Shown piece after piece: positions 5,128 to 23,262 of a stretch of DNA of 64,000 nucleotides (the first letter of the stretch is position 1; each line of letters opens with the position of its first letter). The notes under the pieces were generated by a model that saw only the letters and a program-made list of their open reading frames with translations, was not told the DNA's origin and did no database searches. The stretch comes from Blepharisma stoltei ATCC 30299 (Eukaryota; Protista; Ciliophora): contig CBFDEM010000033.1 of NCBI GenBank assembly GCA_965603825.1, positions 434,001 through 498,000 on the forward strand, written 5' to 3'. A program made the position numbers and the translations under genes.

Positions 5128-8100
5128 ATGATTTTACTGTTCATTTTATTTTCTGCTGTCCTAGCTAAATACTCTGATAACGATATCAATGCACTAGAAG
5201 ATTTCATCTGATCTCAAAATAAATCAGAATCTCTTCAAAGCTTTGCTCCAAATTCAGAAGTCAAGCTTTATTTAGAAGGAAATTTGCTTCTTCAGGAGAA
5301 CAAGGGTAGTTCCAACAGATTCAAAAATATTTTAGATAAATTAAAAAACGATTCCATAGAGTTATATTGGAGGCTTTACTATAGATCTATGGTAAATAAA
5401 TTGGAAATTGGCGATGCAAAGACGAAGAAAAAGATGATGGAAAATTTTAAGGAAAATTTGTATCCAAATATTGATTTAAATGAGCAGCCTTATCAAAGCT
5501 CGAAAGCATTAGAAACAATTAATGGAAGATCTGTTGTAAGTGATAGTGATTTATTTGTTGACATGAGTAATATTGATACAAATTTAGATAGCTATAGAAT
5601 CGTTCGAAATGCTGGAAAGTGGAATTTAAATGTAGAGAAAATGAGCTTTGAAGTGTTTCAGGAGTTTTTATATGACCCGGAAGCTTTTGAATTTGATGGA
5701 GTTGAGAAAAAAATAGGAGAGTATTTCTCGTCTGGGTTGATAAGCCAAACTTGGATATTTCCTCAAATGACAGTAGACCAGTTAGAATATTTATTCAAAA
5801 ATTATCCGGTCATCGCAAATAATTTTGATTTTCTTATATTTTATTTCCCAAAAAAATATAAATTTGGAGATATAGGAGATGAAAACTTACTTTATAAAGC
5901 TTTTGCTGAAGCTTGAACTGAAATAAAAGATCTCCCAGAAAATTATTATATAAAAAGCATTATGCTCTATAATTTATTGTGCGCTGGAATCTCTATAAAA
6001 GAATACGATGAAGCAATGCTGTTAGAGTATATGAATTATCATCGTTATTCAGATATATATAAAGATAATAATAAAGGATACTCAAGGTGGGTGAGCCCTA
6101 ATGAAAATTTATCCTTCTATAATATCTCAGAAAATGAATTATTGCAAGCATATTTTAATCAATTATTCAAAGATAGAGACTCAACTTTTCCCTATGAAAA
6201 GTTTATAACAAAAGATTCTCTTAATGAGTTTTTCGCCCTTGCTAAAATTTTTAATGGAAACGATCCTTTAAATTATGAAAAAAATATCAGTAAACAAACA
6301 ATGAAAAATTTACTAGAATCATCAGAACTTGAACTCTGTAAAGTCAATCCTAAGAAATTTAACGCAAATGATGAAGTGAAGTTATGCTTATCCATGAGAA
6401 ATATCCAAAATCTCATTGTGAGCATATATGAAATTAATACTAAAGCTTACTATGCCAAGAAGGAAGCTGAATTGACAGCTGATATTGAGATAGAAGGATT
6501 TATAGCGAGTGAAGAATATAGCTATACATATAAGGCTTTTCCATTTCTTAAAAGAGAAGAAGAATTTTCATTTCCAACACTTACAGCAAAAAGAGGAACT
6601 TTTATTATTGATTTTATTGGAAATGGGAGACAAAGTCGAGCTATGATAACAAAAGGAAATTTAAAATATATTATCAAGCCATCTGAACCCGGCCAGCAAC
6701 TCTTTATTTTTGATGAAGACAACAAGGTTTGTACAAAGCAAACTTGTGGAATTATTTTAGATGGAAAATTTTACCAGGTAAGTAGCAATGGGGTTTGCCA
6801 AATTCCTTTTGCTGAAGAAGATTCAAATAAAAATCTTATTATAACAGATGGAGAAATTTCACTACTTGTAAAGGATTTCCAGCATCTGTCAAGACATTAT
6901 GAGCTTAAATCAGTATTTTTATTATATGAAGAACAATTCTTGTACAGTCAGAATGCAACAATCCAGATTAAACCATCCTTATACATGAATAGCTTTGAAC
7001 TGCCTTTATCTTTACTAGCAGAATTTGAAATTACTTTGCAAATCACTAGCATTGACCAAAAGATAAATTCAAAAATATTTAAAGCTTCGCCTTCAAATGG
7101 TCTTATATCAATTAATTTTCAAGTTCCCTATAAAGTAACTCGCATAAACATTTCAGCAAAAAGCTCAATAGGATCTGATTCAAATGTTCAACTAGAAAAT
7201 AATTATTCTATCAGCTTAAATTCATATCAATATCTTTTATCAAGACCTTATTTAAGGAAAACAAAGGGTCAAGGCTTTGCTATGGAGCTGAGAGGAAGAA
7301 ATGGGGAGCTATATAAGGGCCAAAAAGTGACTATTGATTTTCACATTTTTGAAACGAGCAACTCTGCTACTTATTTTTCAGACAATGATGGGAAGATTTA
7401 TCTTGGAGAATTAGATGGAGTTCATTTGATTTCAGTTAACTACAATGATGGCTATTTTGAATGGTCATTAGAAGATTTTAAAGAAAAAATTGCTTATCCT
7501 GAAAAAATAAATATTAAGGAAGGAGAAAATATTGAGTTAGACTTCTACCAAGCCCCTTTAATTACTATCAGATCATATAAGAAAAACACTTTATTCAAAA
7601 TGTATAGGAATCAACTTGAAAAAGATTTTACTGATTACATAAAGTATGGAAATGGAAAATTAAAAATTCTAGGGCTTTCAAAAGGAATATATGTGCTGAA
7701 GCTAAGAACGATGAATGCGGCAATCAGAATTGAAGTTTCAGAAGGTTTTGCCTTAAAAGAATTTAACTATTTAATGTTAGACTCTAAATCATTGCCCCAC
7801 AAGAGTCAAGAGTCAAGCATTTCAATAGAAAATATTAAAAGAGAAAATGGCAAGCTAATTATAGATTTTTCAGATAATTCAGAAAACGGATCAGCCTATA
7901 TACTGCTTTGCAATTACTTATCAGGCACAGTAATGAGCATTTTTAATGCCTTAAACTCAAATTCCCAAAAACAATCTGAATTTATTTATGAGGAAAATAA
8001 AATTTCTTACCTGAAAAGCAGAAGAATTAATGAAGAATTTAGATATGCTATCGATAGGAAAAAACAACCAAAGTACCAAAGTATTAATTTGCCAAAACCG

Positions 8101-11100
8101 CAATTAGCATTGAAGCGGCAAAAAATAAAAGATACAGATACTGAAGTTCAAGAAGTTGATATAGGAGAAGGATTTATTATGCGTATGGTTGAGGAAGACA
8201 ACCCAGAAATCTTACTTCTTGGCGATGATAGATTAGATCAGGCCTATTTGTTATCTGGCAGTGGCGGCTTAGAACTTTATAGTTCAGCATATTTTTTAGA
8301 TTTTTTAGAGGCACCTTCAATATGAAGCCATTTAACTATTCCAGTTAATCATCAATTGAGTATTGGTTTAGAAGAAGGCTATTCTCAAGTCATTATCTTT
8401 GCATATAAAAACGGGATTTCTACTATGAAAATATATCCCATAGATTTAGAAATGGTAAAAATTAAACCAATTATTTTAGATCCAGAAATTAATGACAATG
8501 ATTTGCGCTCTGAGCAGATAAAAAATTCTTCTGTATCTTCTGGAGAAACCCTTATTTTACAGTCTCAAGATATTACGTCGATAGAGATTTTGGATTCAAT
8601 TGAAAGCTTGCAAAATATGCAAATCAAATTATTAGATGATAGTAATGAATATAAGGAATGGTTATTTTTAAGCACTTGGTCAAAAATTAGCAATGATAAA
8701 AAGAATTATTATTTCGATCGATATTTCAGCCATGAGCTGAATTTGTTTTTATATTTCAAGGATCAGGCATATTTTAACGCAGTAGTTAAGCCTTTCATTT
8801 CAAATAAAATGGAAAAAGATATAATTGATAAATATTTACTCGGCGAATCTCTAAGCGAATATATTAAAAGTTACTGAAAATTAAATTGCTTAGAAAAAAT
8901 TTTATTGATTGATTGGGGGATAAAGCAAGGAGACAAGACTATTATCAAAGAAGCTAAAGATATAGCTCAAGATTTGATAAACAAGGTTGAACCTATGAGT
9001 ATCGACGAGGAAAAAGATTACGAATTGCTATTAAAAATCTTCCAACTGCCCCAAGAAGAACAAAATATGATTGATTTTCAAAATATAGTAGATGCTGTGA
9101 ATTTAAAATTTTTAAATTATAAAACGAGAGGAGGACTTGCTGATTTTACAATGAATGATGATTTTACATCAGGAAGCCTTAGAATCTCAAATATATATAA
9201 ACCAATCAAGAAAAACACGATAGAAAGAACGAAAGAATACAAAGAAACTTATTATTTTTCAGAAAAAGAATCAAAGGAATCTCTTCAGCCAAATCGTTTT
9301 TGGAAAGAATTAGCCCAATCTATTCTTCTTCAAAAGAAAATTCTTACCCCAAATGCTATTTTTTCACTATCAGGCCTTACAGAATTAATATCAGTTTTAG
9401 CATTTATGGATCTTCCAATTTTATCATCTCCTCTTAGCTATTTTTCTAATGGTTCTACAATTTCGATAGCATCAGACCATAACTTTTTAGCCTTTTATAA
9501 AGACCTTTCCAAAACTCCGATCAACCTTGACCCAGAAATTTTAGTTTCACAAAAATTTATAAACCCTAAAAATCCTAATTCTCAAGTTAAGCAATTCCTT
9601 ACAAAAACCCGTTATGAAAGTAAAATAATAGTTACAAATGCATCTGATATGAACAAATTCGTATATGTTTTACTGCAAGTACCTGGTGGAAGTATTCCTA
9701 TATCAGACTCATTTTACATTAAAACTGAATGCAAAACAATTGGGTCTTATCAAACAGAAATTTTTTCATATCAGTTTTATTTCCCTGAAGAAGGAAATTT
9801 TACAATACACCCAGTTGTTGTTACAAGAAATCAAAAATTGATTGGAAATACAGAAGTGAAGAAGGCAGAAGTATTGGGAAGCATCAAAAATATATCAGCA
9901 GATAATATTGAAGACTTTGCGATAAATGGGAATGAGGATGATATAATGAAATACCTTCGAGAAAATAATTTATATTCTTCAGAGAGATTAGCAAGAAATA
10001 TTTATCATAGGATGAAAAATTGCAGCTTTTATACAAAAGCAATTGCGATATTTAAAGAAAAGAAATATTTTGATGAGCATTTATACTTGTATTCGATGCT
10101 TCATGAAGATTATCCAACATTTTATGAGCTTTTAAGAAGAAATGAAGATTTTGTTCAGAAAATCGGATATAATTTTGAATCCTCTATAATAAAAACTGGC
10201 AAAGAGGATTTTACTCATTATGAGTATTTTCCATTGATAAATGCAAGAGCACATAATTTAGGAGCCAGAAAAGCTATCACGAATCTCCAATTTAAAGAAA
10301 CTTATTACAACTTCTTGATGTTCATTGCTGAAAAAAATAAACTGGACATCATTGATTATATTTGTTTATGCCAATATTATATTCTTCAAGATAGATATAC
10401 AGAAGCATTGAATTTCTATGATAAACTAAAAGAATTAGGTATGAAAGTATCAGAAATATCGCCAAGCCATGGACTATTGCAAATTCAATTTGATTATTTG
10501 TCAGCTTTTCTTTACTCATCTATTGCTAAAGAACTAAGCTCACTATATGCTAATTATCCTGTAGAAACTTGGAGAAATAACTTTATGGAAATTTATCAAT
10601 CCTTATCAGATTCCAAAATTGAAGATGAGAGTCAAGAAGAAATCTCAAGGGAGCCCGCTTTAAGCTTTACAATTGAGAACAATAATCTTAGCTTGACCTA
10701 CCAAAATGTGAAAAAGTGTGAAGTGAAAATTTATTATATTGACCTTGAAATCTTATTTTCAAAAAATCCATTTTTCATTCAGGATCCATCAAATTTTGTA
10801 TTTTTAGCTCCAAATTTACAATTCTCATATGACTTACCTGAAGTTTCCACAACGATTCAGCTGCCAAATGATGTCAAAAGAAAAAGTTTTGTAGTGGAAA
10901 TTGACTATGGAGAATACTCGTCTATAAAAACTGCTTTTAATGCAGCTTTAAAGACAATGATAATTGAAAGATATGGTCATATTAAGGTAATGAGTGAAGA
11001 TAATAATCCAAGATCAACTACTTATGTCAAAGTTTTTGCAAAATTAGCAAGCGGAGAAATAGAATTTTATAAGGATGGGTATACAGATAAGAGAGGGGCT

Positions 11101-11232
11101 TTTGACTTTATCTCAATGAATTATGATAAGTTGTCAAGTGTCGATAAGTTCGCGATCTTAGTAGTTGATGAAGAATTGGGATCTTTAATAGTAGAAGCAA
11201 GCCCACCAAAGACTTTTACTAAGGATTTATAA
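5128..11232 (+). CDS. Giant (2034 aa) secreted protein with macroglobulin-like beta-domain features
   Basis: Four ORF-track fragments share one frame and are joined only by TGA codons (5914, 8323, 8875). N-terminal signal peptide MILLFILFSAVLA-KY; C-terminal YVKVFAK...FYKDGYTDKRGAFDF. Confidence 0.85.
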
Positions 11233-11401: not shown

Positions 11402-11974
11402 ATGAAAAAGCAAGGAGGTTTTGGCAAATTTGCCAAAAAGTTCAGAATCATGGCCGCAATCGAAAAAGAAGATATTTTACTCCTAACTCGCTTAATGACT
11501 ATTTTACATCACACCCCTGAGATGCCTGTAGATAAACTTGGTAATAACATGTTCCATATGGCATGCTATATGGGAAAAATCAAAATGATGAAATTTGCAT
11601 TTGAAAATTATCATCTAGATATTGAGCAATATAATGCAGATGGTTTAGCTCCAATTCATCTAGCTGTAAAAGGTGTTAGCATTGAAGCTGTAAAATGGCT
11701 TTGGGAGCATGGAGCTGATTGCCATATAGTTACACAAGTCTGAGAAAAAAGTCCAATTAAGTTATGTCAAGAAATGCTTAAGGATCCAGAGCATACTAAA
11801 AATTATGGGAAAATAAGGAAAATTTTGGATTATTTGAGAGAATTATATTTTATTGATAAAAGAGGATATGAAAGAAGAAAATTTATTTGGGCTTATCAAA
11901 AATTCAAAGATAAAAACAAGTGGATAGGGAAATTTCCTTTAGGCATGGCAAGAGAAATTGCTGAATTTTTATAA
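11402..11974 (+). CDS. Ankyrin-repeat protein
   Basis: GNNMFHMACYMG and GLAPIHLAVKGVSIEAVKWLWEHGAD; TGA 11741-11743 is read through in frame. Confidence 0.85.
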
Positions 11975-12045: not shown

Positions 12046-13431
12046 ATGACAAATTTTTGGTTTTTGCTGATTTTCTCACTATTTTTTGAAATTTTCTGCT
12101 TTGCGATGACTCTTGATATTAATCAAACAATTAAAATCACTCAGCTAACAGAATGAAACGATTTTCCTATTCAACTCGTTACTTCAAATATCACCGACAC
12201 ATACATCGCTATTAAACTTGAAATAATCGAGAGGCAGTTTCAATCATTTCCTCTTTTATATTTAGGAATAAACTTTGAACCTGATTTTGATAGTCATATA
12301 AATCAACCGAAATTCAATTACTCGGATTATCAATCCTTTTTAAATCAAGAAGAAACACAATGAATTATATTGCAATATGATAGCAAGTTATCAAGCTCCA
12401 GTCTTTATATTGGGATTTGATATGAAAATTTTACCAATGGACCAATACAATATAGCTTATCATTCTTTCAGTCAAATAAACCAATATGCCCTTCAATGTG
12501 TTCTGGCAATGGGCAATGCAAAAACCTTGGGAAATGCTCTTGCTATAGCTCTTATGTAGGTAATGATTGTGAAACTACGACATTTTCTATTGGATTTAAT
12601 GAAAGTAGGTGGGTTGATGTTAAAAGTGATGATAAAACATATTTAAAATCTGATGCATTTCAATGTAACTTTTATTTAGGAGGGTCTGATGTTGTTTTAA
12701 AATGCTCTTTGTCATATGGGGAAGCAGTTTTATACATAGGGTTTCCAACTAATGAGTAAATTTTAGACAGTACTTCAAATCTTCCTAATAAAGAGTCTTG
12801 CGCTTATACTCTCTATTTGTCTCAAGACATAAGATTTATTCACAAAAGCATAAAAACATCAAATTCCTATGGATTTCTTATAATAGGAATTTTTAATACT
12901 TTAAAAGACTCAGGAAACACATTATCAGTAAAATGCTACTTGTCGCATGATAACTCATCCTCGTCCAAAAGCACAAACATGGTGATCGTATATGCATTGG
13001 TTGGAATATCAATATCTATTTTTGCCTTATGAGTTATTGGATTTATTATTAAATGTCGATGAAGAAGACATGCAGTAGACAATGAGCACTCCCCAATGGG
13101 CATAACAAAAGAATCAATTGAAAGTTTATTTCCAAGTTTCAATCTGAAGAATATTGATGACGCAGATATACCAATGTGTATGATTTGCTTAGAAGATTAC
13201 AACCCTAAGTCCAAGGTAAGAAAACTAGGCTGTGGGCATATTTTTCATATGAGCTGCATTGATGAATGATTTAGGCATCATAAAATCTGTTGCTTATGCA
13301 AAAGAGACTGTGAAAGTGTAAATAATAGTGTTTTACCTGAAAATATTGCAACATTTAATATTGAGCAATCAAGAAATTTAAGTGACTCTTTTACTGGGCT
13401 TATTGCTGATGAGCTAAATAACGAGGAATAA
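12046..13431 (+). CDS. EGF-TM-RING-H2 membrane E3 ligase, copy 1 (~451 aa)
   Basis: Signal peptide; EGF CPSMCSGNGQC..CSC..YVGNDC; TM MVIVYALVGISISIFALWVIGFII; RING-H2 CMICLEDY..CGHIFHMSCIDEWF..CCLC; 15-nt introns 12665-12679 and 12756-12770. Confidence 0.88.
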
Positions 13432-13463
13432 TGCGAAATTTATTTAAATATTAAATTAATATA

Positions 13464-14870
13464 ATGCAATCAATATGACCTGCTAATCAAATAAGAACAA
13501 TTTTCGTTATTTTTGCTTGGATATGAGCTGATGGCGTTTCTCTTGATATTGGCTTAACGATGAATATATCGCAAGCTTCGTTGTGAACTTATATTGAACT
13601 AAATACTTCTGGGATTCAATATTACTACACTTCTATAAAACTTGAAATAAAATCTAGAGATTTTCAATGCTTTCCTTTATTATCTTTAGGACTGATGGGG
13701 ATGCCGGAATTTTTGAAAATAAGTGATATTTATAGTGTTACAGGGGATTATACAGATTTTTATTCATATGAAAACCAATTGAACGAGCATCAAATAATCC
13801 TTGATTCCACAATTTTTAAAAACAATTCCAAAGCTTATCTTGGGATTGCTTATCCAAGTTACTGAAAAAATAGTTCACTTTTCTATTCAATCACCTTTTT
13901 TCAATCAAATAGTTTTATTTGTGCTTCGGGGTGCTCTTCACATGGCAGATGCTCAGGCATAGACCAATGCTTGTGCAACTTTGCTTATATAGGAAGAAAT
14001 TGTGGAATAAAATCTACATATCTCGTCTATAATAAACCCGGCCAACTTACTATAGAAAATGACAATATTGAATATTTCTTTATTGATTTGTCTAATTGTA
14101 ATTTAAATTCAGGGCATGAATCAAATTTGCTTCTTAATTGCAGCTGAATAGGTGAAACCAGCATTCTTTTTATAGGGAAGCCTTCTACTTTGTAATTAAT
14201 ATCCAGAGCAAATGACCTCCCTAATAAGAAAAATTATTATTCTTGGATTTCTCTGACTAAGGATGCATCATCACAAGACGCTATTATATCAGACTTATCA
14301 AATTTTAAAATAATTTTGTTAGCAATTTTTAACACCTATACAGATTCTGGACAAAATTTATCAATTTCTTGTACTTGATCTGAAGATTCTTCTAGTTCTT
14401 CAAATCTTAATGTAACCATTATATGAATATCAATTCCAGCCTTTATAGTAGCGCTATTAATGATATCATTGATATTATGGTTTTATCGTCGCGTCAATAG
14501 AGTTCATACTATTCATCACTCGCACGATTCTACACTTGTTGGGATTAATATTGATATAATTCAAAATTATTACCCTATTTATACATGGAGGGACTTAAAA
14601 AATGTCATTGAGGATACAGAGATATGTGTAGTTTGCATGGAAAATTTCGAGGAAGACTCAAAAGTAAGAAAATTGATATGTGACCATGTTTTTCATGCAG
14701 AGTGTATAGATGAGTGATTTAAACAGCATAAGTTTTGCTGTGTATGTAAAAAGGATTGTGAAGCAGTCGAAACTTTATTTTCGCAAGGATGCTCACAAGA
14801 TATACGTATGGAAAGGACTAGCTTATTTACTGATCGTTCAAATGACTTGAATGTTCAAAGTGTCGAATAA
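13464..14870 (+). CDS. EGF-TM-RING-H2 membrane E3 ligase, copy 2 (~458 aa)
   Basis: Same architecture; introns 14098-14112 and 14192-14206; RING CVVCMENF..CDHVFHAECIDE(TGA=W)F..CCVC. Confidence 0.88.
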
Positions 14871-15713
14871 TAAATTTATCGGAGCAGATATTTTCGAGTA
14901 ATTTATAATTATATGTTAATATTTAATTGCATTTGTTAATAATAAATTAAATATGATTAAGCCAAATAGAATGCAAATACTCTTAAATTAAAATTTGACT
15001 ATTAAAAGAAAGAAGGACTTACTTTCAGAATAATATATAAAAATATTGTATAAAATTCTTAATTAATTAATATTCATAATTCGATTAATTTGAAGTTATC
15101 TAGCATTTAAAATGAAGCTGGACCATCTTTGATAAGTCTGAATTTATGCTATGATGAAAATTATTATTTATCTTCAGATACAATTAATTTGTGATTCTTT
15201 TGCATAATTGTAGTGCTGTTTTTTTTGTGACAAGAGTATAAAAATTTTGATAATTATCAATTTATTTTTAATTTAAAATACATGCAAAAGTCTTTAAATA
15301 TGAAAAATCAATAGATTTTTTTATATATCTCCTATATTGATTTTTTGATTAAATTGTTTTGGTCGAGTTTCAATTTATAAGATCATAAGGCTTTATAAAT
15401 TTATATGGTATAAATGATGTTGAAATTTTATAACTCTTATTCAATATAAGGCAACCTTTGATTTTCTACAAATGATTAATTCTTATTAGAACTTTATACT
15501 TAAAAACATATAAATAATTAAAACATTTAAGATAAATATTTAAATATTGTTGAATATTTGGCCAAGTGTAAATAATAGTGTTTTACCTGAAAATATTGCA
15601 ACATTTAATATTAAGCCATCAAGAAATTTAAGTGACTCTTTTACTGGGCTTATTGCTGATGAGCTAAATAGCGTGGAATTAATGCGAAATTTATTTAAAT
15701 ATTGATATATATA

Positions 15714-17081
15714 ATGCAATCAATATGACCTGCTAATCAAATAAGAACAATTTTCTTTATTTTTGCTTGGATATGAGCTGATGGCGTTTCTCTTGATATT
15801 GGCTTAACGATGAATATATCGCAAGCTTCGTTGTGAACTTATATTGAGTTAAACACTTCTGGAATTCAATATTACTACACTTCTATAAAAGTTGAGATAA
15901 ATACTAGAGAGTTTCAATGCTTTCCTTTATTGTCTTTAGGACTTATAGGGATGCCGGAATTTTTGAATATAAGTGATATTTATAGTATCACAGGGGATTA
16001 CACAGATTTTTATTCATATGAAAACCAATTGAGCGAACATCAAATAATTCTTGATTCCACCATTTTTAAAAACAATTCCAAAGCTTATCTTGGGATTGCT
16101 TATCCAAGTTACTGAAAAAATAGCTCACTTTTCTATTCAATCACCTTTTTTCAATCAAATAGTTTTATTTGTGCTTCAGGATGCTGATCAAATGGTTGAT
16201 GCTCAGGCATAGACCAATGCGAATGCAACTTTGCTTATATAGGAAGAAATTGTGGAATAAAATCTACATATCTCGTCTATAATAAACCTGGCCACCTTAC
16301 TGTAGAAAATGACAATATTGAATATTTCTTTATTGCTGTACATGATTGTAATTTAAATTCAGGGGATGAATCCAATTTGCTTCTTAATTGCAAGTGAAGA
16401 GGTGAAACTAGCATTCTTTTTATAGGGGAGCCTTCTACCATGTAATCAATATCTAGAGCAAATAACCTCCCTAATAAGAAAAATTATTACTCTTGGATTT
16501 CTCTGACTAAGGATGCATCATCACAAGATGTGATTATATCAGGCTTATCAAATTATAAAAAAATTTTGTTAGCAATTTTTAACACCTATACAGATTCTGG
16601 ACAAAGTTTATCAATTTCTTGCACTTGATCTGATGATTCTTCTAGTTCTTCAAATCTTATTGCAATCATTATATCAACATTAATTTCTGTCTTTGTTATA
16701 ATATCTATGATATTATGTATATGATGGTGTTTTCGCAGCCGTAATAGTGTTGTTGGGATTAATATTGATATAATTCAAAGTTATTACCCTATTCATGCTT
16801 GGAGGGACTTAAAAAATGTCATCGAGGATACAGAGATATGTGTAGTTTGCCTGGAAAATTTCGAAGAAGAATCTAAAGTAAGAAAATTGATATGTGACCA
16901 TGTTTTTCATGCAGAGTGCATAGATGAGTGATTTAAACAGCATAAATTTTGCTGTGTGTGTAGAAAGGATTGTGAAGCAGTCGAAAATTTATTTTCAAAA
17001 ATCTCACAAGATATACGTATGGAAAGGACTAGCTTATTTACTAATCATTCAAATGACTTGAATGTTCAAAGTGTCGAATAA
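15714..17081 (+). CDS. EGF-TM-RING-H2 membrane E3 ligase, copy 3 (~445 aa; recent duplicate of copy 2)
   Basis: Near-identical to copy 2 except for the TM region; introns 16348-16362 and 16442-16456. Confidence 0.88.
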
Positions 17082-17808
17082 TAAAATTATTGGAGACTAA
17101 AAATTAATAATAAATTAAATATGATTAAGCCAAATAGAATACAAATACTCTTAAATTAAAATTTGACTATTAAAAGGAAAAAGGTCAGCTATTTTAAATT
17201 GGCAAGATTATAGATAGAGTTCGTAATTTTCTTTTCAGACTATATAAAATTCTTAATTAATTAATATTCATAATTCGATTAATTTGAAGTTATCTAGCAT
17301 TTGAAATGAAGCTGGACCATCTTTGATAAGTCTGAATTTATGCTATGCTGAAATTATTATTTATCTTCAGATCCAAATTAATTTGTGATTCTTTACATAA
17401 TTGTAGTGCTTTTTTGTGACAAGAGTATAAAAATTTTGATAATTATCAGTTTATTTTTAATTTAAAATACATGCAAAAGTCTTTAAATATGAAAAATCAA
17501 TAGGTTTTTTTATTTATCTATTTTGATTTTTTGATTAAATTGTTTTGGTCGAGCTTCAATTTATAAGATTATAGGGTATTATAAATTTAGTTTATCTGGT
17601 TCAAATGATTTTGAAATTTTATAAGATAATCAGTTATTATAAATAAAATGTAAAAAATACAATATCAGCTAAAAAAATATTAATACTATGCTTATAAAGA
17701 TCTTTAAATTTGCTGCTATATTAATTTCGATTTATGTTTTTTCAATTTTTCTAATGCTTACAATCCAATAGGATCTTTTACATTTTCTGATAGAAAATCA
17801 TAAAAATA

Positions 17809-19125
17809 ATGTCCAAATATATATACCAAATACTCGTGGCAATTAGTATTTATGCCAATACAATCACTTCAGCAATAGAAATGTATAGCATGGGCCAAGA
17901 AGTTGAGGTTTCACAGTCAACTTTATGAGTCCATGTACAGTTAAATTCTTCCAGCATCCAACAAAGGTATATATCAATATCGCTCTTTATTAAGTCTAAA
18001 AATTTCAGATCCCTTCCTTTACTGGTTTTGGGTTTTAACCAGCTTCCAAAATACTTAGACCAAAATGATACATCCAGCCTGAAATATGATTATGTTGATT
18101 ATTATTCATATGAAAACCATTTGAATGATCATTCAATAATAATGGACACAAACGATATTCCATCATACTCATTAATATTTGTTGGTATTTTTCATAGAAA
18201 TTTTGATCGTGAAACCATCACTTACTCTTTAAAATTCGAAGAATCAAATCAGCATCTTTGCCAGTCGGGCTGCTCAGGACATGGGCTATGCAAATCTATT
18301 AATAATTGCATTTGTAATGCTGGATTTATTGGGAGAAATTGCGGGCAAAGAGGCTCACTTGTGCATTTCGATAAAAATACTTCGATAGAAATTAGCAGGA
18401 ATGAAGTAGGATATTTAGTAGCTGATCTCAGCGATTGTAACTATTATTTAGATGAATATACAAAATTTATTCTTCAATGCAAATGGAGCGGAGAAGTTGG
18501 AGCACTTTATATAGGGAATCCTACAGTTGAGTAAATTTTATATAGTATATCAGATCTTCCAAATAGAAAAAATCATTTTTTATGGACTTATTTGGATCAC
18601 TCTACAGTTCCAACTCTTTATAAGCTTACTCTTAGAGATTTCACAAAAACTACAGTTATAGTATCAATTTTCAATACTTTTATTGGCTCAGAAAATAGTA
18701 TTTTTATTGAGTGCCAATTACTCGAAGACTTACCTGAAACATCTACCTTTTTAAATTGCCTATTTTTACTATGTTTTATATGGCCATTAATCTTGATAAA
18801 CTTATTGTTTTATTTGAAATATCGTGGTGATATTATTGGGGGAGGAAGTCCGGTTGAGATTAATGGAATTCCTAAAAAAATTATAAATTCCTTATATCCT
18901 TGCCAATTTTGAAGAGATATTAAGATGCAATGGGATACAAAAATATGCATCATTTGTATGGAGGAATTTAAAAGCCAGTCAAAAGTGAGGCAATTGATAT
19001 GCGGGCATGCTTTTCATAGAAACTGCATTGATGTGTGGTTTAAAAATAGTGTAAGCTGCTGTGTTTGCAAAAATAATTGCAACAAGGCTGAACAAAAAAA
19101 TTTGTCTCCGAGTGTTTTAGGATAA
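17809..19125 (+). CDS. EGF-TM-RING-H2 membrane E3 ligase, copy 4 (~428 aa)
   Basis: Signal peptide; EGF CQSGCSGHGLC..CICNAGFIGRNC; TM; RING CIICMEEF..CGHAFHRNCIDVWF..CCVC; introns 18437-18451 and 18531-18545. Confidence 0.88.
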
Positions 19126-20588
19126 ATAATTTAATCTGATTAAATTAATAAAAATCTAACTATTGAACTACTTTAAATTTGTGGAATTATTATAACTATT
19201 ATTTTAATCATTAAAAATAAAAAAAACGAATAAAATTTTTAATATTCTTATTCAATCTATGGAAAGAAAGATCTCTGAAAGCCTGCTACTTCATTGATAA
19301 TTTTTTATCTCGATCATGATCGATTAGCCAGTGATAAATCTGTTTATTTAATTCCAGTATTCTCCAGACCTGCTCTGGAGGACTTTCTGATCATATTTTA
19401 TAATTCTTCTTCCCACATCCTCTGAATTTCAAATTCGATCCAACCAAAGCTAATAATTTATTCGGACCAAATTGCAATTATTAGCGGTCATTTCTCCGGA
19501 TTATGAGACTCAAGCTCATCCATCAGCCTCAAGCAAGGAGAAATGCATATCTACCCATTTAGAGCAGGAGCTGGAAGACAAGGAGGATATATTCGAGCAA
19601 GCAGGTGCAAATCCAGGTTGTCAATAGCATCATAAGCCGAAAAATAGCAATTGGTATTCGAGCTAGCTCGCCAAGCAAATCATCCCAATTGTTTAATTTC
19701 GACTTGTTAAACAATATGTAAGCAGTCAAACCGTAATTAAAATTAAGATTCAATGTAACTCAACTTTAGATTGGTCGTTTTCTATAGACAGTTTAAATCA
19801 GAAGTCATAAACTATGATTTAAAAGTATTAAATCTAATGAAATTATGTGCCCCTCAGAATGATCTCAGCATGGAGCTTCCTTATAGTTTGGAAATACAGC
19901 TATGATGAATATCATATTGGGAGGGAGTTGCGAAATAGCATCTTGCCCATTTTATCCCAGTAAAATCATATGATTGATGTTATTTATCAATAGGCAGATA
20001 TAAACTTGAGTAATCATTATATTGTAAATATATAAATATAGAATTTAGCTCCTGAATAGGTGGAGGCTATAGAGAGCATGCATATTAGGAATCCAACTAA
20101 TAAAATTTTTATATATATTATTTAATCTTCCGAATGAAATAATTTTTTATACTCTTCAAATTTTAAAAATCTCCAGAAACGTGAATTTTTATATTAATTA
20201 TAGAACATCTACAGCATTTCTTTTTATAGCCATTTCTAATAAAAACTACATTCTATTCAAGCTATAACAACAACGTAAAAGCTTCAGAATGGAAATTCAG
20301 AGTTTGCTGAGTTTTTTGGCTAATGACTTTCTTTGTTCAATTAATTATGAATCCTGTTTGGGTTTTTACCGATTATTTTACCCTACAAAAGAAGAAGATA
20401 AAATTGGAATAAGTCGTATTTTCAAAAAATGCTTAAATTCTTTCTACACGGTTATATATTTATTCATATGGACCACGACTATAAATCCAATAAAAATAAT
20501 CTTATAATTTGGTAGCATAATAATGCTTTATTTAGAAAAATTTAATTTTCAGTCACTCTCAAAGAATTGGCGTATAATTAATAAATTA

Positions 20589-21999
20589 ATGAATCATTCA
20601 AGAATATATGGTGTCTTTATAATTCAAATTGCATGAAGCATGCTATCGCTTGATATTAATCAGTCACTTAACATTTCTCAAGACATATTGTTGAATGTTT
20701 TAGAATTTAAACCCTCAAACATACAGGAAAGGTACATTTCCATAGAACTTACTTTAAACAACTTTAATTATACAGCAATTCCTTTATTGACTCTAAGTCT
20801 TAATAATCAGCCCACGCTTTCCAAGCCTCCACAAATTTCTTCTCTAATTTCAAATTTCACTGATTTTTATGCTTACAATAATCAGCTCGCTCAGCATACA
20901 GTTATCTTTGATTACCAAGAAATGGCATTCAATACTTCATTTTTTATTGGAATTTTATATGAAAATTATAGTGATTCTGCAATAACTTATAATTTAAAAT
21001 CTCAAGAGTCTAGCGATTTGATGTGCCCTAATAAATGCTCAGGCATTGGACGAGGAAGGTGTGCCGCCCTTAATAATTGTGCTTGCTATTTTCCATATGT
21101 AGGAAGAGATTGTGGGAATAGAATTTCAGTAGCTAATTTAAATAAAAATGTGACTGTACCAATCGAGAGCTCCCAAAGAGGTTATTTAGAAATAAACAAC
21201 ACGCAACGTAATTGCTATTCAGTAAATAAGAGTAGTGTGATTTTAAAATGCACATGAATAGGAAATGCTGGGATGATTTATCTTGGCTGACCAACTTCAA
21301 AGTAATTGATAAAGTAGCGAAAAAGATTTACCGAATAGAAATAATTACATGCTAAGGCTCAATATAGGCCAAGATAAAAGCCCTCTTGAAAAGAAAATTG
21401 ATTTTTCTGAGTCTAATCCAATTTCATTAATGGCAATTTATAATACTCAGGAAGACAAAAAAATAACCATTGCTTGCCAAATATATGAAAGTTCATCATC
21501 ATCGTCATCATCATCATCATCATCTGCAAAAGTTTCTAAGCCAATTATAGTTCTCATCTGCATTCTCTGCATTTCATGCTCACTTTTAATCATGCTAGCA
21601 ATTGGCTGTGTCCTACGTTATCGCTATCTCAAATCAATGAATTCGCGAATTTCCGAAATAGAAAGCCCTTCAAAAATTCCTACAAACTCAATAAATACCT
21701 GATACCCTATCACTGACTTAAAAGATTTCAAACATATGGAGCTTCCCGCAATGTGTATGATTTGCATTGAAGACTATTCCCCTGATTCCAAAGTCAGAAA
21801 ATTAAAATGTGGGCACATTTTTCATGCTGCCTGCATTGATGAGTGGTTTAGGCACAACACTATTTGCTGCTTATGCAAAAGGGTTTGTGATACTGTTGAA
21901 GCATCACCTTTAGGTGATTGCTCACCTATAAGAGACGATAGTACAAGAATCTACAATGAATCTTTTAATGGGCTGACTATTGTAGAAATACAGCAATAA
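20589..21999 (+). CDS. EGF-TM-RING-H2 membrane E3 ligase, copy 5 (~459 aa)
   Basis: EGF CPNKCSGIGRGRC..CACYFPYVGRDC; poly-Ser stalk; TM; RING CMICIEDY..CGHIFHAACIDEWF..CCLC; introns 21208-21222 (15 nt) and 21302-21317 (16 nt, which explains the frame change). Confidence 0.88.
21493..21523 (+). repeat. (TCA)n microsatellite encoding a poly-Ser juxtamembrane stalk
   Basis: tcatcatcatcgtcatcatcatcatcatcat immediately before the TM segment of copy 5. Confidence 0.8.
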
Positions 22000-22028: not shown

Positions 22029-23129
22029 TTATTTAACCCGTTTACCTTCTTTCCACTCACCTTCTTTTCTCTCACCTTTTGGATTATAATAAACACCACT
22101 TCCATGCTGTTTTCCATTATACCAATATCCTTCATATTTTCTACCATCTGGCCAAGTAAAAACGCCATACCCTTGTTTCTTGTCATCGATATAGCCTCCT
22201 TTATAGCACCTTCCATCAGCCCATGTGAAATTTCCGTTTCCGTCCATTTTATTTTTCCTTCATTCTCCTACATACTTTCTTCCATCACTCCAACAATAAA
22301 CTCCCATTCCATGTATATTGTTATCAAAAAAATCACCCTCATATGTGCTTCCATCAGCCCAGTTAAATTTTCCTTTTCCATGCTTTTTTCCATGCTGGTA
22401 CTCCCCTTCATATTTAGCATGATCTGGCCATGTTTCGACGCCATATCCATGCTGTTTATCGTCTTGTCATTGTCCTGTATATTTGGCTCCATCTGTATGT
22501 GTATAAATTCCATATCCATGAGCTTTATCATCTTTTCATTCCCCTTCATATATATCTCCGTCGCCATGAATTAGCCTTCCTTTTCCATTGGCTCTATCAT
22601 GTTTCCAATACCCTTCATATTTGCTTCCGTCACATCATACTTGTGTCCCTTTACCATGCCTTTCTAGATTTTCGCTTCATTCTCCTATATAAACGGCTCC
22701 ATTTTCTAATTGGACTGGACCTCGCTGAATCTTTTGAATTCCGTCTGAATCGTCGACGTCGTATGTAAAAGGGCCAAGTTTTCGAGATGCAGCTATTGTG
22801 GAAGCGTTGGAGTAGTTTGGGATTTCTCCTTGAATTTCATGTACTGAAGTACGGGGTTGAGGAGAATAGCCTGACATCATGCGATTTTCAGTTGGGGAAG
22901 CTCGGAAATAGTCTTTTGTTAAGCGACGATCTATATAACCTCGAATAACTGATTGAATTTTTATTAAATTTTCAATATTTATGGATAACGGAGGTGGAGA
23001 TATTTGAGGTTTTAGCAAGAAGTCAGGGGCAGATTCTTGTTGAGGTTTGGAAAAAATGTTTTCTGATTTTACATTAAATTGAACATCTTCTGCTGTTGTG
23101 TCTCGTAAGCATGAACAATGTTGACCCAT
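22029..23129 (-). CDS. MORN-repeat protein with N-terminal acylation motif and IQ motif (366 aa)
   Basis: MGQHCSC N-terminus; [14 protein letters not shown]; tandem MORN repeats (YEGEW..DK.HGYG) in which the conserved W is often TGA. Confidence 0.92.
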
Positions 23130-23262
23130 ATTTTTATGTTAAATTTTTGAAATTTTGATAGGAATAGTCTTAAATTGTATTAGATATAAAACCCCTCAAA
23201 AAATTTTTTTCAAAGAAATCTTAAATTTTTGGTCATTAATTTATTTATATTTTAAGATTTTG

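Follow-up and report, generated by a model that had tools for sequence, protein, structure and literature searches.

Five putative membrane-anchored RING-H2 ubiquitin ligases with a predicted jelly-roll/EGF ectodomain in the ciliate Blepharisma stoltei

Introduction

Five neighbouring genes of the ciliate Blepharisma stoltei raise the question of which proteins they encode and what these proteins might do. The genes lie on the forward strand at positions 12046-21999 of a 64,000-nucleotide stretch of macronuclear DNA (strain ATCC 30299, contig CBFDEM010000033.1; G000:C33:434001-498000), which is referred to below as the window. The macronuclear genome of this strain comprises 41 Mbp and uses UGA as a codon for tryptophan; it contains "tiny, predominantly 15 and 16 bp introns" (PMC9942806). 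Standard calling of open reading frames (ORFs) shreds the five genes, because UGA means tryptophan here and because the introns measure only 15 or 16 nt.

In our analysis, the five genes probably encode type-I single-pass membrane RING-H2 ubiquitin ligases (E3s) of an uncharacterised family, which would work in a manner similar to the PA-TM-RING ligases. This reading combines features of the sequence, structural models and analogy. The family comprises at least 19 full-length genes in B. stoltei, which are distributed over the genome in several clusters and fall into three subfamilies. Database searches were done with exon pieces or with the public proteins P0005 and P0002, and the spliced models were joined for frame checks and for comparison of the copies. 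The genome assembly searched has 41.46 Mb in 64 contigs.

Five intact genes

When TGA was read as tryptophan, long frames appeared across the array. Each gene contains two micro-introns of the form GTA...AG, and with both removed the five frames are uninterrupted. Copy 1 (12046-13431, 451 amino acids) has exons at 12046-12664, 12680-12755 and 12771-13431, separated by introns of 15 nt each at 12665-12679 and 12756-12770. Copy 2 (13464-14870, 458 amino acids) consists of exons 13464-14097, 14113-14191 and 14207-14870 with introns at 14098-14112 and 14192-14206. Copy 3 (15714-17081, 445 amino acids), a recent duplicate of copy 2, has exons 15714-16347, 16363-16441 and 16457-17081 and introns at 16348-16362 and 16442-16456. 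Copy 4 (17809-19125, 428 amino acids) follows with exons 17809-18436, 18452-18530 and 18546-19125 and introns at 18437-18451 and 18531-18545, and copy 5 (20589-21999, 459 amino acids) with exons 20589-21207, 21223-21301 and 21318-21999 and introns at 21208-21222 (15 nt) and 21302-21317 (16 nt). Thus the five paralogs which the initial annotation had described as masked by UGA codons and micro-introns exist as clean frames of 428-459 amino acids.

Both intron positions are kept in all five copies, as that annotation had also stated; its intron lengths needed one correction, since intron 2 of copy 5 has 16 nt and not 15. Every copy has an in-frame stop within intron 2, and in copy 5 the removal of this intron also restores the reading frame. 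Intron 1 is free of stops in all five copies, and its support therefore comes from the conserved boundaries and from the public models of copies 1 and 4. The spliced model of copy 1 is letter-identical to the public B. stoltei protein P0005 and that of copy 4 to P0002. The public model of copy 3 (P0004, 243 amino acids) retains intron 1 and terminates at the stop within intron 2. A library search with exon 1 of copy 5 found no protein of more than 39% identity, and the gene seems to be absent from the public protein sets, perhaps owing to its 16-nt second intron.

The apparent lack of copy 5 in the public sets, its need for a 16-nt intron and the truncated public model of copy 3 could be taken to mean that some or all of the copies are decaying duplicates or gene-prediction artefacts without function. 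We consider this hardly credible. All five frames are intact after splicing, and the zinc ligands and the cysteines of the EGF module are all kept. In the comparison of copies 2 and 3, the ratio of nonsynonymous to synonymous substitution rates (dN/dS) is below one. Furthermore, introns of 16 bp are normal in the B. stoltei genome, and the models of copies 1 and 4 equal published models, which were built with Intronarrator (PMC9942806).

A predicted membrane-anchored RING

The proteins share one domain order: an N-terminal hydrophobic leader, an ectodomain of about 280 residues with one EGF module, a Ser-rich stalk, one transmembrane (TM) helix, a G[IL]xxxxI motif and a RING-H2 domain. In copy 1, Pfam, hydropathy and AlphaFold 2 place the EGF module at about 12487-12570, the TM helix at about 12979-13053 and the RING-H2 at about 13177-13299 of the forward strand. 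Leader, EGF-containing ectodomain, single TM and cytosolic RING-H2 had been proposed initially, and the three methods reproduce this arrangement as a prediction. The stalk, which had been called weak in copy 4, is missing there; in the other copies a run of serines precedes the TM.

In all five copies, hydropathy identified the leader and a single strongly hydrophobic segment at about residues 300-335. The part N-terminal of this segment carries 3-9 N-x-S/T sequons and 8-9 cysteines, the part C-terminal of it 0-2 sequons; the outer part is accordingly rich in glycosylation sequons and predicted to contain disulfides. Acidic or Ser-rich sequence stands on the N-terminal side of the TM, and clusters of arginine and lysine follow directly after it (KCRWRR, YRRVNR, FRSR, RYRYLK). 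The AlphaFold model of full-length copy 1 (pLDDT 79) shows a leader helix at residues 2-16, beta structure up to residue 291, one long helix at 298-333, a juxtamembrane helix at 345-351, the RING with a pLDDT of 85-92 and a disordered tail. All these cues agree in predicting a type-I protein whose RING is cytosolic.

Pfam zf-RING_2 (PF13639, gathering cut-off 27.3 bits) matched pieces of copies 1, 2, 4 and 5 with 34-50 bits; full-length P0005 (copy 1) reached 46 bits, and full-length P0002 (copy 4) also scored above the cut-off. The RINGs of copies 2 to 5 lie within 14620-14767, 16834-16981, 18941-19088 and 21749-21896, respectively. Copy 3, which was outside the Pfam scan, has the same ligand pattern as the other copies and is 93% identical to copy 2 over the RING. 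The pattern C-x2-C ... C-x-H-x2-H-x2-C ... C-x2-C is present in all five copies as well as in all 19 paralogs, each of which keeps the eight zinc ligands of a complete C3H2C3 RING. The last zinc pair reads C-C-[LV]-C in each window copy, in keeping with the C-C-x-C ending noticed initially; among the 19 B. stoltei genes it is C-C-[LVI]-C in 16, C-P-M-C in one and C-Y-I-C in two. A hydrophobic residue after Cys1 and a Trp after Cys6 are invariant in an alignment of 12 sequences, and each window copy has a lysine or arginine after the last Cys.

Residues 335-451 of copy 1 matched solved, active RING-H2 ligases, among them RLIM/RNF12 (E 6e-14), RNF38 (3.7e-12), RNF13 (2.9e-9), Arabidopsis RMR1 (At5g66160, E 4.3e-9) and ZNRF3 (5e-7); RNF126, RNF165/Arkadia, RNF24 and rice EL5 were matched as well. 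The alignment with RLIM takes in a segment ahead of the RING (GLTKEQIDNL in RLIM, GITKESIESL in copy 1). This pre-RING segment, which is predicted as a short helix, has the form G[IL]xxxxIxxx[YF]P throughout the family and lies between TM and RING in all members. RLIM/RNF12 and RNF38, for which complexes with the ubiquitin-loaded conjugating enzyme (E2~Ub) have been solved, thus match the cytosolic module best in sequence, and the match extends to the pre-RING helix. Unlike the Blepharisma proteins, however, both are soluble nuclear or cytosolic proteins without membrane anchor or ectodomain.

The RING also matched HRD1/synoviolin and AMFR (E 1e-7 to 1e-6). Together with the fact that jelly-roll sandwiches, as they are predicted for the ectodomain (see below), commonly bind carbohydrate, this would fit ligases of the quality control in endoplasmic reticulum (ER) and Golgi, whose sandwiches would capture misfolded or glycosylated proteins in the lumen and whose RING would label these for degradation. 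We assign little probability to such a role. HRD1 and AMFR are matched less well than RLIM, RNF38 and RNF13. Moreover, the ligases of ER-associated degradation are typically multi-pass proteins encoded by single-copy genes, a profile which a family of 19 genes with a Ser-rich stalk does not fit.

An ectodomain of two predicted jelly rolls

The initial annotation had labelled the proteins as "EGF receptor + RING". This label overstates the EGF: according to the structural model, the bulk of the ectodomain is formed by two beta-jelly rolls resembling PPC/collagen-binding domains, and the EGF is a bridge of 30 residues between them. That the bridge is an EGF-like module is clear from the six-cysteine pattern, which is found near residues 146-180 in all five copies, and from profile matches. 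A profile of 12 family members matched, in the PDB, the EGF of teneurin (E 1.8e-18), WIF1 (4.6e-9) and the EGF of reelin (2.1e-8). In Pfam, a short piece of copy 1 scored above the cut-offs of EGF_2 (24.4 bits, cut-off 22.1) and EGF_Teneurin (26.2 bits, cut-off 24.3); the EGF modules of the other copies scored below the cut-off. DUF7949 (PF25820) matched only the EGF stretch, below its own cut-off, and was discarded as uninformative.

The AlphaFold model of residues 21-304 of copy 1 (pLDDT 87.5, pTM 0.82) consists of two beta-sandwiches, which flank the EGF. The C-terminal sandwich superimposes on the collagen-binding (PPC) domains of ColG and ColH with Z 10.6-10.8 and a root mean square deviation (rmsd) of 2.3-2.7 A over 93-103 residues, and thus has, in the model, the PPC-type jelly-roll fold (PF04151). 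Its match to the GOLD domains of p24 proteins is about on par (Z 10.0-10.7, rmsd 2.4 A). The N-terminal sandwich matched the PPC-type C-terminal domains of proteases (1wmd, 2luw) with Z 8.1-8.9. On the level of sequence, PF04151 found no match in the pieces and full-length members scanned; within the ectodomain, Pfam recognises the EGF alone and leaves both jelly rolls unassigned. Comparison of the profiles of the two sandwiches with hhalign gave a probability of 48% (E 1.8e-4, 89 columns), which is suggestive of an internal duplication but does not establish it. The model thus depicts the outer domain as a generic pair of binding-type jelly rolls without family assignment.

The best structural match to both domains together was the extracellular region of SID1/SIDT1/SIDT2 (Z 12.6-12.9 over 190-200 residues, rmsd about 9 A). 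For these proteins as for ColG and ColH, the likeness is one of fold only, with sequence identities of 7-13%, and in contrast to the Blepharisma proteins they have no EGF between the sandwiches. The module order sandwich, EGF, sandwich recurs in the reelin repeat (subrepeat A-EGF-subrepeat B) and as CUB-EGF-CUB in MASP and C1r. Foldseek matched reelin repeats with E 1e-5 to 2e-7 at a TM-score of about 0.3, and the family profile matched reelin over the EGF and about 25 following residues (E 2e-8), with no sequence signal outside the EGF otherwise. MASP CUB-EGF-CUB was likewise among the Foldseek matches, but among the top 50 structural matches by Z there was no reelin or MASP chain. Homology to the reelin repeat was rejected because of this absence and because the sequence match is confined to the EGF region.

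The match to GOLD, the domain of the p24 cargo receptors, which is as good as that to PPC, brings up a second role. The proteins could be luminal cargo or sorting receptors, whose ectodomain would carry soluble cargo from Golgi or endosomes to a storage or secretory organelle (pigment granules, extrusomes, food vacuoles) and whose RING would mainly control their own trafficking. Such a role has been proposed for the plant RMR (receptor-membrane-RING) proteins, and the RING of copy 1 does match Arabidopsis RMR1; a large, diversified family would also suit many cargoes. Still, we regard this role as rather unlikely. The fold match is generic, and a conserved RING with its E2-contact residues argues that catalysis matters. 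In addition, a cargo receptor of this kind would differ from the ligase that we propose mostly in the kind of target and not in the chemistry.

Proposed mode of action

As the probable function of the five proteins we favour that of membrane RING-H2 ligases. The ectodomain would point out of the cell or into the lumen of secretory or endolysosomal compartments and bind a partner, which may be a protein or a glycan. The cytosolic RING would recruit an E2 of the UBE2D type and ubiquitinate cytosolic parts of the bound or a neighbouring membrane protein, or of the ligase itself. The membrane protein modified in this way would then be directed to endocytosis or lysosomal degradation. The best mechanistic analogy to this scheme is offered by the PA-TM-RING proteins RNF13, RNF167, GRAIL and ZNRF3/RNF43.

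The PA-TM-RING family is defined by a PA domain, which serves as luminal or extracellular binding domain, a TM and a RING-H2 (PMC4021871). Its members RNF13, RNF167/Godzilla, RNF128/GRAIL, RNF130 and ZNRF3/RNF43 resemble the Blepharisma proteins in having a signal peptide, an outer binding domain, one TM and a cytosolic RING-H2, which hydropathy, flanking charges and AlphaFold 2 helices predict for the latter. The RING sequences are related as well, as the matches to RNF13 and ZNRF3 show. The differences are the two all-beta jelly rolls with EGF in place of the PA domain and the C-C-x-C in place of C-P-x-C. PF02225, the Pfam family of the PA domain, gave no match at E <= 1 on the ectodomain pieces and none at E <= 0.01 on full-length members. 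Membership in the PA-TM-RING family was therefore rejected, since Pfam found no PA domain and the model consists of jelly rolls and EGF. RING patterns were also searched within about 1.5-2 kb of ten PA loci (L021-L030) that were detected in the B. stoltei genome. None of the ten had such a pattern nearby, and thus a classical PA-TM-RING gene was not detected in this species by what was a lower-bound search with a simple pattern.

A second comparison is offered by the plant ATLs, which have the order TM helix, GLD motif, RING-H2 (PMC5764321). The Blepharisma proteins, with G[IL]xxxxIxxx[YF]P between TM and RING, are reminiscent of this order. Rice EL5 and Arabidopsis RMR1 were among the RINGs matched by copy 1, and GUB_WAK-ATL (ATL21A-like) clusters were among the structural look-alikes. 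However, most ATLs have no ectodomain, and where there is one it is unrelated to that of the Blepharisma family. Furthermore, beside the third zinc ligand the RINGs of ATLs, BTLs and CTLs conserve a Pro (PMC5764321), where the Blepharisma proteins have G, I, K, N or H instead.

Several points weigh against the proposed mode of action. The likeness to PA-TM-RING proteins would be a functional one only, as the Blepharisma proteins lack a PA domain. In all five window copies, the Pro of C-P-x-C is replaced by Cys; this Pro contacts the E2 in other RINGs. The Pro beside the third zinc ligand is likewise missing in all five: the residue before the third zinc-ligand Cys is G, I, I, I and K in copies 1 to 5 and N, H, Y, S, L or M in other members. 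Since both Pro positions are altered, the choice of E2 or the activity could differ. Finally, the ectodomain has a generic fold, which resembles PPC, GOLD and CUB-like sandwiches alike (Z about 10-11) and gives no clue to a ligand.

Size and history of the family

The window copies are 31-36% identical in pairwise comparison, except for copies 2 and 3 with 86%, and their ectodomains match each other with E 1e-26 to 1e-38. A search of the genome with the ectodomain of copy 5 yielded 19 loci, all of which match the full-length family hidden Markov model (HMM) through the RING. The phylogenetic tree has three supported subfamilies, and one of them unites the five window genes with a gene pair on contig 10 (100/100). 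Because this pair nests inside, the window array is not a clade of its own. Hence the amplification of the family in a ciliate, as claimed initially, is borne out, whereas the array is not a self-contained set and is one of several clusters.

The genes of subfamily B also have intron 2 and contain a third micro-intron, which is in frame and interrupts the RING directly ahead of its final C-C-L-C zinc pair. Loci with this third intron are L008-L013 and L015 (contigs 16, 62, 37, 29, 58 and 55). As the intron splits the RING, a plain search for the RING pattern misses the genes of this subfamily.

The family expanded by tandem duplication, and copies 2 and 3 are the product of a recent one of 2.25 kb. 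The first unit (13314-15563, forward strand, 2.25 kb) takes in the terminal approximately 118 nt of copy 1 as well as copy 2 with its downstream spacer; the second (15564-17790, forward strand, right end approximate) contains a relic of the 3' end of copy 1, copy 3 and the downstream spacer. The duplication is evident from the direct repeats D2-D5 and D7-D10, which are 80-98% identical and spaced by 2168-2250 nt. The relic, at about 15564-15681 upstream of copy 3, is non-coding and translates to a near copy of the C-terminal tail of copy 1; it is there because the duplicated unit starts inside the 3' end of copy 1. The intergenic DNA flanking the two copies is 92-98% identical. The only strongly diverged part of the two genes is the stalk, TM and juxtamembrane region (14407-14540 and 16657-16720), with 50% amino acid identity and indels of 3 nt and 33 nt.

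Between copies 2 and 3, dS is 0.16 and dN/dS 0.42 overall, which indicates that both are under constraint. By region, dN/dS amounts to 0.14 for the N-terminal sandwich and to 0.34 for the cytosolic part; for stalk and TM it reaches 1.59, on small counts. Among all window copies the RING is the best-kept region (52-80% identity). The outer domains are 23-42% identical; the C-terminal sandwich, with 23-28%, is among the least-kept regions together with the leader, stalk and TM, the juxtamembrane segment and the tail. Diverged outer domains joined to a conserved RING suggest many partner specificities with one catalytic output.

The divergence of the ectodomains could also speak for sensors at the cell surface, which would recognise a mating pheromone, prey, a pathogen or another cell as an external cue and whose RING would be switched on or off by the ligand. 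The type-I topology and the Ser-rich, mucin-like stalk are typical of surface proteins, and plant ATLs with an outer domain of the wall-associated-kinase type are among the structural look-alikes. But the dN/dS of the N-terminal sandwich of copies 2 and 3 reflects purifying selection and does not resemble an arms race, and most known PA-TM-RING proteins are endosomal (PMC4021871). We therefore judge this role improbable.

With respect to the distribution of the family, a HMMER search with exon 1 of copy 5 against 1.84 billion representatives returned the B. stoltei paralogs and a few relatives with the full architecture. Of these relatives, P0019 and P0020 stem from metagenomes and P0024 from an MMETSP transcriptome, and others belong to further assemblies. 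The contig of P0020 (k141_927256, L020; ENA metagenome, 78 kb, 51% GC) is gene-dense and eukaryotic; in its nine called genes all stops are TAG or TAA, and in-frame TGA occurs 0 times against 49 TGG. Protein homology searches with the ectodomain region of copy 1, the ectodomain alignment and the full alignment returned almost only the query. In the ESM-Atlas, the ectodomain model matched clusters with zf-RING_2 that are labelled Chlorophyta (TM-score 0.66-0.68 over 261-262 residues), and a feature search found two further RING-bearing clusters in Ciliophora with 70 and 74 members; these look-alikes, of which none is characterised, are leads and not alignments. In view of the metagenome and MMETSP relatives and of the look-alike clusters, the architecture is not specific to Blepharisma, and the clusters make an origin in Blepharisma alone unlikely. 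A search of the literature found no described family of this kind in ciliates, and the public names of the proteins are generic ("unnamed protein product" or "RING-type domain-containing protein"). The initial statement that a characterised ciliate example is lacking thus holds.

A more far-reaching interpretation would be that sandwich-EGF-sandwich-TM-RING is an old, independent fusion of receptor and E3 common to ciliates and green algae, and that in Blepharisma its diversified members form ligand-controlled surface receptors, for example for mating pheromones, prey or self cues, which signal directly by ubiquitination. To our knowledge, the receptors for the Blepharisma mating pheromones are still unknown. 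We hold this interpretation to be very unlikely.

Genomic surroundings

The spacer between copies 4 and 5 (19126-20588, 1.46 kb) is the longest in the array and contains only short open frames of up to 130 codons (19243-19635). The flanking genes look unrelated to the array when judged by eye. Upstream, a gene at 11402-11974 (forward strand) looks like one for a small ankyrin-repeat-like protein, and an open frame of 2034 codons extends over 5128-11232 (forward strand). Downstream, a gene at 22029-23138 (reverse strand) looks like one for a MORN-repeat protein with an IQ-like segment.

Conclusions

In animals, RNF43/ZNRF3, GRAIL and RNF13 are key regulators of the levels of surface receptors, and they now serve as handles for the targeted degradation of membrane proteins. 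These animal proteins are single-pass membrane RING ligases with an outward-facing binding domain; in at least 19 genes of an early-branching ciliate, the same layout would be combined with an outer domain of another, uncatalogued kind, and hints of it extend to other ciliates and green algae. The public annotation can be corrected for copy 3, which is truncated, and for copy 5, which is apparently missing. No new principle is revealed by these genes; the family is real, well defined and so far uncharacterised. It provides defined candidates for regulators of membrane-protein turnover in ciliates and, with its two sandwiches that have no Pfam model, a candidate for a new domain family.

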